NCBI GenBank assembly: GCA_051530055.1
Contig: CM121342.1
Coordinates: forward strand, 6,013,489-6,077,488
Length of the DNA: 64,000 bases
Direction of reading: 5' to 3'
DNA from: Neoechinorhynchus agilis
Taxonomy: Eukaryota > Animalia > Acanthocephala
Shown: piece by piece, positions 27,931 to 60,930 of the stretch
Position numbering within the stretch: position 1 is the first letter of the stretch
Layout: each line of letters opens with the position of its first letter
Position numbers and translations under genes: made by a program
Notes under the pieces: model-generated
Told to the model about the DNA's origin: nothing
The model's input: the letters and a program-made list of their open reading frames with translations, nothing else
Databases searched by the model: none

Positions 27931-29147
27931 TGGATTAGTAGTCAAAGCAACGAAAGCCATTTTTAAAGAGAGTGATCGTATTTCCACAATGTGGATAAAG
28001 CTATATTTTCACTCTCGGATTCCTTGATGAAATTTGACGATTCTTGAGAGGGTTAGAGACTTAAGCGCCGAGAAACCTTCAGAATGCGTTTTTCCTGGAG
28101 GGATTACGATATGAAGAGAGCATTCGCGTAAACCAGAGTGCCGTTGATTGGTTTATGTCTCCTGACAATCCTTAATACATTCCCATTGGATCGACAGTTT
28201 CAAGAACGGGGGGTAAATATTCTTTTAAATTTGAACCGAAGATCATTAAGTCATCCTTAAGAATGGATTTGAAAACTTGGACAAAACAAGTGAACATTTT
28301 GTATGAGATATTTTTTGTAGAAATCGCTTAGGAAATTGCGGATTTTTCGCTCGTATAGCGACATAAAAGATCTTTATAAGAAAGCATCGACGGTATAGAG
28401 TCTTATTTCTTATGGCCCATAAACATAAATTAGCCCTTATTCTCCGAATTACTTTTATTTTCGATTTCATTCCTGACAGTTTTAAAATGTAACGAGGAAT
28501 AAGCAACTGACGATTCGTTAAATCTTCTTAACGCAAACGGAAAATTAAACTAAATCAGAGGCACCATTTTAAAATACGTTTGACCGGTTTTTCTAATTGG
28601 GTGGAAGCTTCTAGAAAGTGGAGGAAGCCGTCGAAAGATTAACTTTGTTGCGTATTTTCTAAACAGTTTTTCTCTTCAACAGTCGTGAGTCAAGACGGTT
28701 TCGTTTCAATATTAAATAACCGAAACAAATTGGATTATAATAAATTGGAACGGAAATTCCACATTAACGAAACGGTACTAGAAATAGAAAATATGGCTCG
28801 TGGATAAAAAAACGAGAGATAAGAATGTTCAAATTTACCTATGAGAATCTATTGAGGTTCATAGCTCGAAAGAGCCGTGATGACACAGAAAAAAAAGGAA
28901 ATGAACATTTTAACTCCTGAGTCAGTCACACTTTGTAAACTCATGATAAAGATTCTTGCGAAAATCTAGGACAAACATAAGAAAATCCTTAGGGATGATT
29001 CTAAAGGATAAAAGATTTGTTTTGAAATATTTCGAAAGAGCAATCCCGACGGTGGTTTCCTCTCTTTTGGAATATTTCGCGAATAATAAAATGATTTTTA
29101 AACGACAAAAGTCAAAATTGTAAAGAAATTAATCATTATTGTTTCAA

Positions 29148-29288
29148 TTTCAATTAGCGATATTCACTCAGAGATAGATTTATATTGAAATTTTTCGGCC
29201 TTTTCGTTGGCCTTCTTCAGTCAGATTGCTTGTAAGTTTTTAAATTTTCAATATAAATCTATTTCTGAGTGAATATCGCTAATTGAAA
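29148..29288. repeat. Inverted repeat, about 43-bp arms, one mismatch
   Basis: ttcaattagcgatattcactcagagatagatttatattgaaa and its reverse complement about 55 nt downstream. Confidence 0.9.
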
Positions 29289-30740
29289 AAGTCAAAATTT
29301 AGCATCTCAACGATACGGATTTTCTCTTGTTGATAATATCTTAATTTTTTTGTGGCAAAACGTTCCGAAAACAATGATTGATGAAGCGAAACATTTCCAA
29401 CAAATTGAAATCATTTCCGTCAAAAGTATAAACTTTGACTTAGCCGAAGGATTTTCTCTGTCGATGATAAAGAAATATTTTGAAGAATCAAGAAGACCAG
29501 TCAACAACGGCCGAAAAAATGACTATTAAAACAAAAGATAAATCTCAGATTTTAGAAGTTCCCTCAAATGAAGAGATCAATCTTTACGTTAAGAATGAAA
29601 ACTTCTTTTTTCATAAGCAAAATGGGCCATACTTTTTGTTAGCTTGTCAAGCAATTCGTTCCAAGAATGCCAGCAACTTTCCTAGTTTCGTACTGTGAAG
29701 ATAAAAAGCAAAAACATTTTGGCCTGTTATTTGGATAACAAAAACATAAAAACCCAGTAAGAAGTGATGCGAAAACTCGAGGTATTAAAAAATTCGGGAA
29801 TTGAAATGTCTGTTTAAAACGTTTTCTGATTGGCTAAAATTTTGATTAATTTTCTTTAATTATTGGACCTTGTGGTTTAAATTTAACGAGATCAAAGCGC
29901 ATCAGAAAAAAAAGAAACTAAAGTAGATTTCGTTGAACAGAGAACAAAAAATTTTAGTTTTCTTTTAAATTAGTAAAAATTTATAACTAAAGAGGCGAAA
30001 ACAACAAAAACACAAATTAGTATTTCAATCTTTAAAGCCAGAAAAAAATGTTTTTCGGCGCAAAAAGAATGAAACAACTAATTTTCTCCAAATTTCAACC
30101 AATTAGATTAATTCGTGCGCGTTTTTCGAATACTAACAAGAAAATCATTATGAAACAAAAATCCTTCAGGAAACTCTTGAGTCATAAAAATAATTTTAGA
30201 TATTGAATAAAATAAGGCAAAGAAAACACCATACAAATTTTTCAATCTGACGATTAGCAATTTGGATACAAATAAAAAGAAAACAGTGAATGTTGATTCT
30301 TTTTTCTTTAACTATGTTCTAAAATCTAAAAATTTGTGTTAAAGAAACGCTGTGAGCGATTTTAACCAGTTCTATTAGACAATTAAAGCATTACTCGAAA
30401 AAAAAGATAGAATTCCAATTTCCCACTGAAATAAGAACTAAAAAAATCAAAGAATTATTCCAACAGACCAAAATGAGAACATTCAATTTGATCGTGTCAA
30501 TATTCGACTAAATTTTGAAGTTGGAAGAAGAGAGGTTTGTTGATTATACGCAGGCGCGGTGTTACTGCGAAATAAAAGAATGTTTTCGTTGGATTAAAAG
30601 TAGCTTTTCTCGGATTGATTCGTGATGATCGATTTTTTCCAATATCTCTCCTCAAAGATAGTAACCGATTTGGTCGTTGAAAAGTGAAACGGATTGTAGA
30701 AGTGGCGTAACGGATAAGAAGAAAGTGTCGAATGGACTAA

Positions 30741-57334: not shown

Positions 57335-57930
57335 GCCCGAGTGAATTCTAAAAGTTAACTTGAATCACAAAAACGTTCTAATCCAAAGAAAAATACGAAT
57401 CCTGATTTTAAATAATAAAAATGAGCAATAAACAATTTTTTTAGCGATTTTCCGTTTCTTTTAAAAGTGCATTTTTAAATGGTTAATAAAATCAATAGAA
57501 AAAATTCTCAGGTTTAAAGAGCGAATTAATACTTTTCGTTTTCTCCAATAAATTCATTGGCTTCTTAGACTTAAAAAATAGAGCCATTTTTTTCGCCCGA
57601 GTGAATTCTAAAAGTTAACTTGAATCACAAAAACGTTCTAATCAAAAAAAAATAAGAATCCTGATTTTGTGGCCGGGGCGGAATAAATAGTAAAAATGAG
57701 CAAGAAATAAAAAAAATTAGCGGTATTATTTTTTTTAAAAGTGCATTTTTAAATGGTTAATAAAATCAATAGAAAAAATTCTCAGGTTTAAAGAGCGAAT
57801 TAATACTTTTCGTTTTCTCCAATTTAAATAATAAAAATGAGCAATAAACAATTTTTTTACCGATTTTCCGTTTCTTTTAAAAGTGAATTTTTAAATGGTT
57901 AATAAAATCAATAGAGCATAGATAATCCTT
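57335..57930. repeat. Degenerate tandem duplication, about 260-bp unit
   Basis: gcccgagtgaattctaaaagttaacttg at about 57335 and 57595; further blocks are repeated a third time. Confidence 0.8.
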
Positions 57931-58231
57931 TTCGTTTTCTTTAAAATGAATTTGAAATATTTAATTGAATTAAACTTGACACTTTTTGGGCCTCATAATT
58001 TGATGATGGCCACTTAAAATTTGTGTGATTCCAAAAAAAAATAGATATTAAACAATAAAGTGAATTCCAAACAAAAAAGATATCGATTATTATAAATCGT
58101 CATTAAAAAAAAGGGTTAAAATGTGGAAACAATTTAAGAATAGTCCACTTTCGATCAAGTAGAATCTTTCGTGTTGTGTAGATCGACTTTTTTTTCTCGA
58201 ACCCCACAATTCCGGTTCAAAGATTGACTCA

Positions 58232-58840
58232 ATGTCGACTCCGGCGCGTCGTCGACTGATGCGGGATTTCAAAAAGTAAGTGATTTTGATTATTGATTTT
58301 ATTTTTATATTAAAGACTTCAATCGGACGATAATATGGGTATAAGTGCAAGTCCAACAGACGACAACATAATGGTATGGGACGCTGTGATTTTTGGACCG
58401 GAGGACACTCCCTTCGAAGACGGAACATTTAAACTTCGACTGGAGTTTTCTGAAGATTATCCAGCAAAAGCTCCGTTGGTGAAGTTCACTACAAAAATGT
58501 TCCATCCAAACAGTAAGCGGACGCTATTCAAATTATGAAAGATTTTCTTTTAGTCTATAACGACGGTCGGATTTGTTTGGACATTCTACAGACTCGATGG
58601 AGTCCTACTTATGATGTAGAAGCGATTCTTACCTCGATTCAGGTGAGTTTTGTCTTCTTTTTTTCCAAGGGTGAGTTTTAGAACGTTCAGTCTCTTCTTA
58701 ATGAGCCAAATACCAATTCACCGGCTAATAATGAGGCAGCAGAGTTGTATGTGAAAAACAAGAGCGAATACGCGGCACGAGTTCGGGCTTGCGTCCGGGA
58801 GAGTTGGAAATCCGTGGATTCTGTTGGTGCCAATAATTGA
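58232..58840 (+). CDS. UBE2A: Ubiquitin-conjugating enzyme RAD6/UBE2A-B (4 exons)
   Basis: [50 protein letters not shown] and SPAN. Introns at 58276-58315, 58513-58553 and 58643-58690. Confidence 0.95.
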
Positions 58841-58931
58841 GAGAGAGAATATATTGTCTTCTTTAAACTATCGTAAAATATCTCCTTTTTTTGTTTAATA
58901 TTTGAGACTCTGCATTAGACGCGCTTTTTAG

Positions 58932-59081
58932 TCCTTGCTCAACGATCCAAACCCGTCGTCGCCCGCAAATGTTGTGGCCGCCAATATGTTCATCGTGAAC
59001 AAGGCTCAGTATGAGAAGGCAGTTAGGATTGCCGTCGAGGAGAGCTGGAAATGCGTCCAGCGAGATGATGATGTCGCATAA
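58932..59081 (+). CDS. Duplicated alternative terminal exon (4b) of RAD6/UBE2A
   Basis: ttttag acceptor, phase 0, 150 nt, encoding [55 protein letters not shown] at 59080-59085. Confidence 0.8.
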
Positions 59082-59084
59082 TAA

Positions 59085-60930
59085 ACTCATTCGTCTCGAG
59101 AGAACACTCGAATTCGCAAGGGATCCTCAGGCTGTTTGCCGCCGGTCTGTAGAATCTTGTTTTCCGCTCTTTCGTCCGAAACTCATTCGAGATTATCCGT
59201 CGCTCGTTGTTGGCGCCGTGGAGTAAATTTAAAAGAAAATGTAAAACTCTTTCTCATCCGTTTAATTAATAGTTCTCAAGAGAACACTCGAATTCGTGAG
59301 AGGTTCTGAGGTTGGATATTTGCCGCCGGTCTGTAGAATTTTGTTTTCCGCTCTTTCGTCCGAAACTCATTCGTGATTATCCGTCGCTCGTTGTTGGCGC
59401 CGTGGAGTAAATTTAAAAGAAAATGTGAACTCTTTCTCACATGGAAAAACTCGAAATAAATCCGTTTAATTTATAGTTCTCAAGAGAACACTCGAATTCG
59501 TGAGAGGTTCTGAGGTTCGCTGTTTGCCGCCGGTCTGTAGAATCTTGTTTTCCGCTCTTTCGTCCGAAACTCATTCGAGATTATCCGTCGCTCGTTGTCG
59601 AATTCGAGGTCTGAGGTTGTTTTGCCGGTCTGTAGAATTTGTTTTCCGCTCTTTCGTCCGAAACTCATTCGTGATTATCCGTCGCGTGCGCCGTGGAGTA
59701 AATTTAAAAGAAAATGTAAACTCTTTCTCATCCGTTTAATTAATAGTTCTCAAGAGAACACCGATTCGGGACTGGGTGGGCCGGTTGTAGAATTTGTTTC
59801 CGCTCTTCGTCCGAAACTCATTCGTGATTATCCGTCGCTCGTTGTCGAATTCGTGAGAGGTTCTGAGGTTGGATATTTGCCGGTCTGTAGAATTTTGTTG
59901 TTTTCCGCTCTTTCGTCCGAAACTCATTCGTGATTATCCGTCGCTCGTTGTTGGCGCCGTGGAGTAAATTTAAAAGAAAATGTGAAACTCTTTCTCATCC
60001 GTTTAATTAATAGTTCTCAAGAGAACACTCGAATTCGCAAGGGATCCTGAGGCTGTTTGCCGCCGGTCTGTAGAATCTTGTTTTCCGCTCTTTCGTCCGA
60101 AACTCATTCGTGATTATCCGTCGCTCGTTGTTGGCGCCGTGGAGTAAATTTAAAAGAAAATGTAAAACTCTTTCTCATCCGTTTAATTAATAGTTCTCAA
60201 GAGAACACTCGAATTCGCAAGGGATCCTGAGGTTGGCTGTTTGCCGCCGGTCTGTAGATCTTGTTTTCCGCTCTTTCGTCCGAAACTCATTCGGATTATC
60301 CGTCGCTCGTTGTTGGCGCCGTGGAGTAAATTTAAAGAAAATGTAAAACTCTTTCTCATCCGTTTAATTAATAGTTCTCAAGAGAACACTCGAATTCGTA
60401 AGGTTCTGAGGTTGGATATTTGCCGGTCTGTAGAATTTTGTTTTCCGCTCTTTCGTCCGAAACTCATTCGTGATTATCCGTCGCTCGTTGTTGGCGCCGT
60501 GGAGTAAATTTAAAAGAAAATGTGAAACTCTTTCTCACATGGAAAAACTCAAAATAAATCCGTTTAATTAATAGTTCTCAAGAGAACACTCGAATTCGTG
60601 AGAGGTTCTGAGGTTGGATATTTGCCGGTCTGTAGAATTTTGTTTTCCGCTCTTTCGTCCGAAACTCATTCGTGATTATCCGTCGCTCGTTGTTGGCGCC
60701 GTGGAGTAAATTTAAAAGAAAATGTAAAACTCTTTCTCACATGGAAAAACTCAAAATAAATCCGTTTAATTTATAGTTCTCAAGAGAACACTCGAATTCG
60801 TGAAACGTTCTGAGGTTGGCTGTTTAATTTGCCTGTTCAAAACAGTTTAAAAAATTGAGATTTTAAAACGTTTTTGTCTTGTAGAATTTTGTTTATTTTT
60901 TTTCTGCTCTTTCGTCCGAAACTCATTCGT
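59085..60930. repeat. Tandem array, about 180-200 bp unit with internal subunits
   Basis: gctctttcgtccgaaactcattcg recurs about 12 times; the array starts directly after the exon 4b stop. Confidence 0.93.

Follow-up and report, generated by a model that had tools for sequence, protein, structure and literature searches.

Evidence for a tandemly duplicated last coding exon in the RAD6/UBE2A-type gene of the acanthocephalan Neoechinorhynchus agilis

Introduction

Can a single RAD6 gene supply an animal with two E2 enzymes that share one catalytic core and differ in their C-termini? As a hub E2, RAD6 works with RAD18 in DNA damage tolerance, BRE1 in histone H2B ubiquitination and UBR1 in the N-degron pathway. 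The question is raised by a locus of the acanthocephalan Neoechinorhynchus agilis, contained in a stretch of 64,000 nucleotides (assembly GCA_051530055.1, contig CM121342.1, positions 6,013,489 to 6,077,488 of the forward strand) that we call the window and in which all positions below are counted. A first reading of these letters, the sequence-only reading, had proposed that the gene ends in two tandem, diverged exons of identical length, derived from an old duplication kept by selection and used as alternative last exons. Here we examine this proposal using RNA contigs, sequence comparison and the corresponding loci of other animals. Taken as a whole, the evidence is best explained, with high confidence, by tandem duplication of the last coding exon of a RAD6/UBE2A-type E2 gene.

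Results

Four RNA runs from one study shared 61–64% of the words of 58200–59100, and their assembled contigs were mapped to 57900–59270. Introns 1–3, which have GT..AG ends, were absent from these contigs, and we therefore take the contigs to come from RNA; contigs of this kind show neither RNA ends nor strand. The gene lies on the forward strand and its coding sequence starts with the ATG at 58232. The coding part of exon 1 (58232–58275, 14 aa plus 2 nt) matches the N-terminus of both annotated proteins of the locus, P0155 and P0156, and is joined to exon 2 at 58275>58316 (GT..AG, 4/4 runs). Exon 2 (58316–58512), placed by RNA joints, translation and alignment of the HPN motif, encodes the UBC core as far as that motif; its joint to exon 3, 58512>58554, was found in three runs, and run X2 has matching loose letters at both ends of the contigs. 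Exon 3 (58554–58642) encodes the catalytic Cys88 and ends in ...TSIQ. It has one donor only, the GT at 58643, and is the source common to both joints further downstream.

What follows exon 3 is double. Proximal intron 3 (58643–58690, 48 nt), spliced out in the 4a form, leads to terminal exon 4a (58691–58840), which has 49 codons, a TGA stop (58838–58840) and a neutral tail, SVDSVGANN. A spacer of 91 nt (58841–58931) with neither AATAAA nor ATTAAA separates it from terminal exon 4b (58932–59081), which has 49 codons, a TAA stop (59079–59081) and a weakly acidic tail, QRDDDVA. Both exons measure 150 nt, are in phase 0 with exon 3 and are preceded by AG (58689–58690 and 58930–58931), so the twin exons of identical length described from the sequence are indeed present, as is the AATAAA said to overlap the 4b stop, at 59080–59085. 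In either form the full protein has 159 aa, and residues 1–110, the catalytic core, are identical. This is the single RAD6 locus of the 46.2-Mb N. agilis genome (n = 1).

Both forms are already in GenBank, as two 159-aa proteins under one locus tag named [quoted passage not shown]. P0155 (KAL7671170.1) ends in 4b, its C-terminus being equal to that exon, and P0156 (KAL7671171.1) likewise ends in 4a. These entries may have been derived from the same RNA data as used here, and for this reason we do not count them as independent support.

Is exon 4b reached by splicing? Splicing to 58932 had been set in advance as the check on the proposal of two isoforms. Joint 58642>58932 (listed as 58640>58930, cut moved by +2) was found in 4/4 RNA runs of the study beside joint 58642>58691 (listed as 58637>58686, cut moved by +5), which was also present in 4/4, both with GT..AG ends. 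The k-mer depth of isoform-specific contigs, a rough guide and no reliable abundance, was 70–148 for 4a and 98–236 for the 4b joint, the 4b:4a ratio being, again roughly, 1.4 to 2.2 across the four samples. Because these depths are of the same order, neither 4a nor 4b looks like a trace product. We infer that both RAD6 proteins accumulate. The 3′ UTR of the 4a mRNA does contain exon 4b, as expected if 4b were a decaying relic of the duplication and splicing to it were noise without a functional product. A joint that recurs in every run, at a contig depth not below that of 4a, argues against a relic, to which we return with the evidence on selection.

Where do the two mRNAs end? The 297-nt contig that carries the 4a joint spans 58686–58959 unbroken in each of the four runs. 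Hence 4a-spliced RNA crosses the spacer and the 4b acceptor, so that what is chosen is one of two 3′ splice sites, and the 3′ end is shared. Contigs cannot prove RNA ends, but in three runs they stop at 59073–59086, and the AATAAA at 59080–59085 is probably the 3′ end signal shared by both mRNAs. A single transcription unit, with one 3′ end and two acceptors that compete, is the most economical reading. The alternative last-exon use put forward earlier thus holds in so far as two isoforms arise from one core, and does not hold in the sense of separate poly(A) sites, since 4a RNA reads through into 4b.

The same contigs bear on the possibility that the assembly has placed two alleles, or a collapsed paralogue, in tandem. 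Apart from being a general possibility, such an artefact could be suspected from the young satellite that starts just after 4b; against it, RNA contigs of four runs extend from 4a across the spacer into 4b, the two copies are merely 54% identical in DNA, and the same layout is found in independent assemblies from other phyla. We regard an artefact as extremely improbable.

What is the mechanism of acceptor choice? The exon 3 donor has two acceptors to which it is spliced, 241 nt from each other. Use of the proximal one gives the 4a protein, with translation ending in 4a and 4b carried along as 3′ UTR. Use of the distal one discards 4a with the intron and gives the 4b protein, whose stop codon overlaps the poly(A) signal. 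The spacer (58841–58931) is accordingly 3′ untranslated sequence when 4a is used and part of a 289-nt intron when 4b is used. Since the introns removed from this RAD6 gene when the proximal site is chosen measure 40–48 nt, the proximal acceptor lies at a distance usual for this gene; the pyrimidine tract is better at the distal acceptor (...CTTTTTAG) than at the proximal one (...AACGTTCAG). A search for RNA pairing that might loop out 4a gave no inverted repeats and no unusual fold (z-score +0.77), and a direct 11-mer common to intron 3 and the spacer is probably there by chance. No joint leading from within 4a to 4b was seen in the contigs of the four runs. As a separate observation, a stretch of 28 nt contains two copies of the donor motif GGTGAGTTTT, one at the boundary of exon 3 (58642–58651) and one inside intron 3 (58670–58679); no RNA joint uses the second copy.

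Choosing one acceptor or the other also alters the untranslated part of the mRNA. Because anatomy dictates the lengths, the 3′ UTR of the 4a mRNA is at least ~240 nt long and the 4b mRNA has almost none, a regulatory difference that is certain. One may then ask whether regulation is the whole of the difference, both mRNAs being made and their proteins being interchangeable. The 3′ UTR difference, which follows from the anatomy, and the narrow range of the rough contig-depth ratio over the four samples would agree with this; the protein comparisons below weigh against it.

At its 5′ end, the RAD6 mRNA appears to be trans-spliced. One contig of run X2 carries a 20-nt leader that is foreign to the window and ends in ...ACTTACAAGCA; it is joined directly before 58223, at an acceptor AG (58221–58222) 9 nt upstream of the RAD6 ATG, leaving a 5′ UTR of 9 nt (58223–58231). 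In run X4, a contig is instead unspliced upstream and reaches 57905. The leader has ~104 copies in the N. agilis genome, compared to 0 for a control. In ~12 of these, it is followed by a GTAAGT donor within a conserved unit of ~200 nt that resembles an SL RNA gene (loci L007–L009); these candidate SL RNA genes had no match in Rfam.

Several repeats were noticed around the gene. A leader copy followed by AAT and not by GT lies on the reverse strand of the window (29140–29290), in a palindromic, MITE-like element with inverted arms of ~45 nt, and this form makes up most of the ~90 such leader copies genome-wide. The AT-rich DNA upstream of RAD6 (window 57700–57960) holds two copies of a direct repeat of ~35–40 nt (…AAAGTG.ATTTTTAAATGGTTAATAAAATCAATAG…). 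Downstream, a satellite of ~10 copies with a unit of 180–200 nt occupies ~59090–60930 and directly adjoins the 4b stop and poly(A) signal. RNA contigs of low depth reach into it, one of them with a tandem joint that goes back 177, and the satellite is therefore transcribed at some level or read through.

Are the two exons versions of the same protein segment? As the sequence-only reading had counted, they share 23/49 residues (BLASTP of 4a against 4b, E 2e-15), all 23 identities falling within the first 42 residues. Its motifs were also recovered: N-x-x-SPAN and ESWK stand in both exons, and the tails are unlike each other. Searched alone against the PDB, each exon matches the C-terminal 40–47 residues of Rad6/UBE2A/UBE2B structures; the best match is human UBE2A for 4a (9e-11) and yeast Rad6 for 4b (4.5e-11), the latter partly covering the acidic tail. 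Because each exon by itself matches RAD6/UBE2A chains, the likeness of 4a and 4b goes far beyond chance, and both are, as judged from sequence, bona fide RAD6 C-termini.

The rest of the protein places the gene in the RAD6 subfamily. Both isoforms match Pfam UQ_con (PF00179; cut-off 27), P0155 (4b) with 175.2 bits over positions 1–137/140 and P0156 (4a) with 181.5 bits over positions 1–139/140. H78, P79, N80 and C88, encoded by the common exons 2 and 3, are invariant in alignments A4 and A5. A further alignment, A3, in which fungal Rad6 and the window exons stood as separate rows, was the source of a profile search that returned P0155 and P0156. The protein has the 14-residue N-terminus that marks the RAD6 subfamily, and its best matches are Rad6/UBE2A/UBE2B and not other E2s; the other E2 loci of the genome match exon 2 at no more than 56% and 4b only with E > 0.05. 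AlphaFold models of both isoforms show helix 3 at 124–132, helix 4 at 134–150/153 and disordered tails, with pLDDT 79–94 over residues 111–150. These models are a weak test and hardly separate the isoforms, because the family alignment drives them.

Have both copies been under selection? Between 4a and 4b, pS is 0.74, which is saturated, and pN is 0.37. We used 201 distinct segments of the family as a reference for conservation; 16 columns reach at least 90% conservation among these segments, and of the near-invariant residues 4a keeps 15/16 and 4b 16/16. S120, A126, Y137, V141, V145, S148 and W149, invariant in alignments A4 and A5, are kept in both exons. Frame and invariant positions thus survive although synonymous sites are saturated, which argues for purifying selection on both copies. 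A neutral copy of such age would have lost them, and selection must accordingly have acted through most of the history of both. The sequence-only reading had spoken of an old duplication kept by selection: the saturated synonymous sites and the retained invariants bear this out, with "old" taken in the sense of saturated dS.

Database searches with 4b yielded no close kin, which could again suggest a relic. A word search among proteins of 27–86 aa found no match; a region search with P0155:111–159 returned the query itself as its sole match; and a representative search over 50%-identity clusters, which hide isoforms, gave 497 matches, the best at 66–67%, and no close kin. Thus, no close relative with a 4b-like exon emerged from the protein databases. 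These blanks are accounted for by limits on words and length and by sparse sampling of Syndermata, and do not indicate absence. The intact frame of 4b, its full set of near-invariant residues and a PDB match as strong as that of 4a make a non-functional relic a very improbable reading, and we retain a pair of terminal exons that are both in use.

Which functions could the exchange affect? The alternative segment comprises residues 111–159, which make up loop 8, where the gateway Ser120 lies, both helix 3 and helix 4, and the tail. The 26 positions that differ between 4a and 4b are mostly variable sites of helices 3 and 4 and of the tail; residues of the catalytic cleft are kept. In yeast Rad6, residues 141–149 are reported to be required for Rad18 binding and residues 150–153 for Ubr1 binding, the acidic tail matters to activity, and phosphorylation of S120 regulates H2B ubiquitination; roles of the gateway Ser120 in loop 8 and of Ala126 in helix 3 come from the same work (bioRxiv 10.1101/2021.10.12.464121). 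The exchanged segment spans the positions tied in yeast to Rad18 (141–149) and Ubr1 (150–153) as well as the tail. It is plausible that the two isoforms would differ in their preference for E3 partners or substrates. If the proteins were interchangeable and only their regulation differed, there would be no reason to conserve the invariant positions in two proteins while 26/49 residues diverged, and the divergence is located in helix 3/4 and the tail, regions linked to Rad18 and Ubr1 binding in yeast. A purely regulatory difference is therefore unlikely, and we favour two proteins that are distinct in their C-termini.

Is the paired terminal exon peculiar to N. agilis? The DNA of the wasp Cotesia congregata (L091) and the cricket Gryllus bimaculatus (L092) shows a ...TSIQ exon followed by two terminal exons, each with its own acceptor and stop, and the layout with two terminal exons is also present in the DNA of two ENA assemblies with mollusc-like sequence (L093, L095). 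As in N. agilis, the pair starts at the same codon, after ...TSIQ in phase 0, in arthropod and mollusc-like RAD6. Their spacers between the terminal exons are 570–1250 nt, compared to 91 nt in N. agilis, and the copy that bears the acidic tail varies between groups. RefSeq lists isoforms X1/X3 of the orthologue ("Ubc6" or "E2-17 kDa", Drosophila-type) in many arthropods. At an octocoral locus (L094) there is just one terminal exon. Metagenome loci (80, at most 68% identity) were considered as analogues and rejected: the five with two matches are tandem intronless E2 genes of different families.

Gene models at such loci can be misleading. In Nucella lapillus, Gryllus bimaculatus, Cotesia congregata and Timema monikensis, public models fuse both RAD6 terminal exons into one protein of 200–233 aa (P0157, P0159, P0160 and P0172); the A3 profile search had returned these models too, each with two copies of the terminal segment in succession. 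The DNA of Cotesia and Gryllus has a stop after the first copy, and the fused models are therefore annotation errors.

Did the pair arise once or repeatedly? The N. agilis exons share 21–25/40 identities with all others and are so diverged that they cannot be paired one-to-one with the "a" and "b" exons of other phyla. In a maximum-likelihood tree of the 40-residue core, both sit on long, unreliable branches among non-animal sequences. In AU tests, a lineage-specific 4a+4b pair (p-AU 0.25) was not rejected, and the same held for a tree that groups all first-copy exons together (p-AU 0.23). In the free tree, the arthropod first copy is nested with the arthropod second copy and vertebrate sequences, which is a hint of independent duplications. 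That the paired terminal exon is an ancestral feature of protostome RAD6, kept for more than 500 million years in arthropods, molluscs and syndermatans and supplying two E2 forms, one with an acidic tail and one without, that would steer a single core to different E3s or substrates, is a tentative idea that we consider rather doubtful.

Discussion

The N. agilis pair belongs to a known type, a terminal exon duplicated in tandem and spliced alternatively. It resembles tandem duplicated exon substitution, as in exons 3 and Ab of U2AF1 (PMC5224494, PMC9741552), in which adjacent homologous exons of equal length and phase are used one per protein and the isoforms are identical but for one homologous segment. 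Mutual exclusivity exists here at the protein level: the 4b RNA lacks 4a, and the 4a RNA keeps 4b untranslated. Unlike U2AF1-type pairs, however, the N. agilis pair is terminal, and the stop that closes its first copy turns the second into UTR, so that exclusivity can do without a steric, NMD or RNA-docking mechanism.

Comparison with well-known RAD6 enzymes shows likeness as well as difference. Vertebrates have UBE2A and UBE2B, separate genes with a nearly identical C-terminal segment, and thus likewise two RAD6-type E2s with the same catalytic core per organism; in N. agilis, by contrast, there is one gene, and its forms are 47% identical in the C-terminal segment. Yeast Rad6 carries an acidic tail of 23 residues. 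The 4b form is like it in having a short acidic end and unlike it in having only three Asp in its tail, and the resemblance of 4b to yeast Rad6 (NDPN, SPANV) may be convergent.

How new is the finding? That the gene has two isoforms is real yet not new, as both forms were already deposited and have parallels in other protostomes. A limited literature search found no paper describing paired RAD6 terminal exons, and the paper on the N. agilis genome and transcriptome (BMC Genomics 2025, PMC12690905) has no mention of RAD6, UBE2 or trans-splicing. For N. agilis itself the result is therefore modest: it validates the existing annotation of two isoforms. It also exposes several public gene models elsewhere in which the RAD6 terminal exons have been wrongly fused.

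The main interest lies in the recurrence across phyla and in a natural experiment on the RAD6 C-terminus. With isoforms that differ in nothing but loop 8, helix 3, helix 4 and the tail, the pair offers a ready test of which C-terminal surfaces govern partner choice by RAD6, and it bears on how one small E2 is shared among RAD18, BRE1 and UBR1. If the pair were ancestral after all, invertebrates would have in it their equivalent of the UBE2A/UBE2B gene pair of vertebrates. The recurrence of the layout in several protostome phyla suggests a general need for two C-terminal variants of RAD6.
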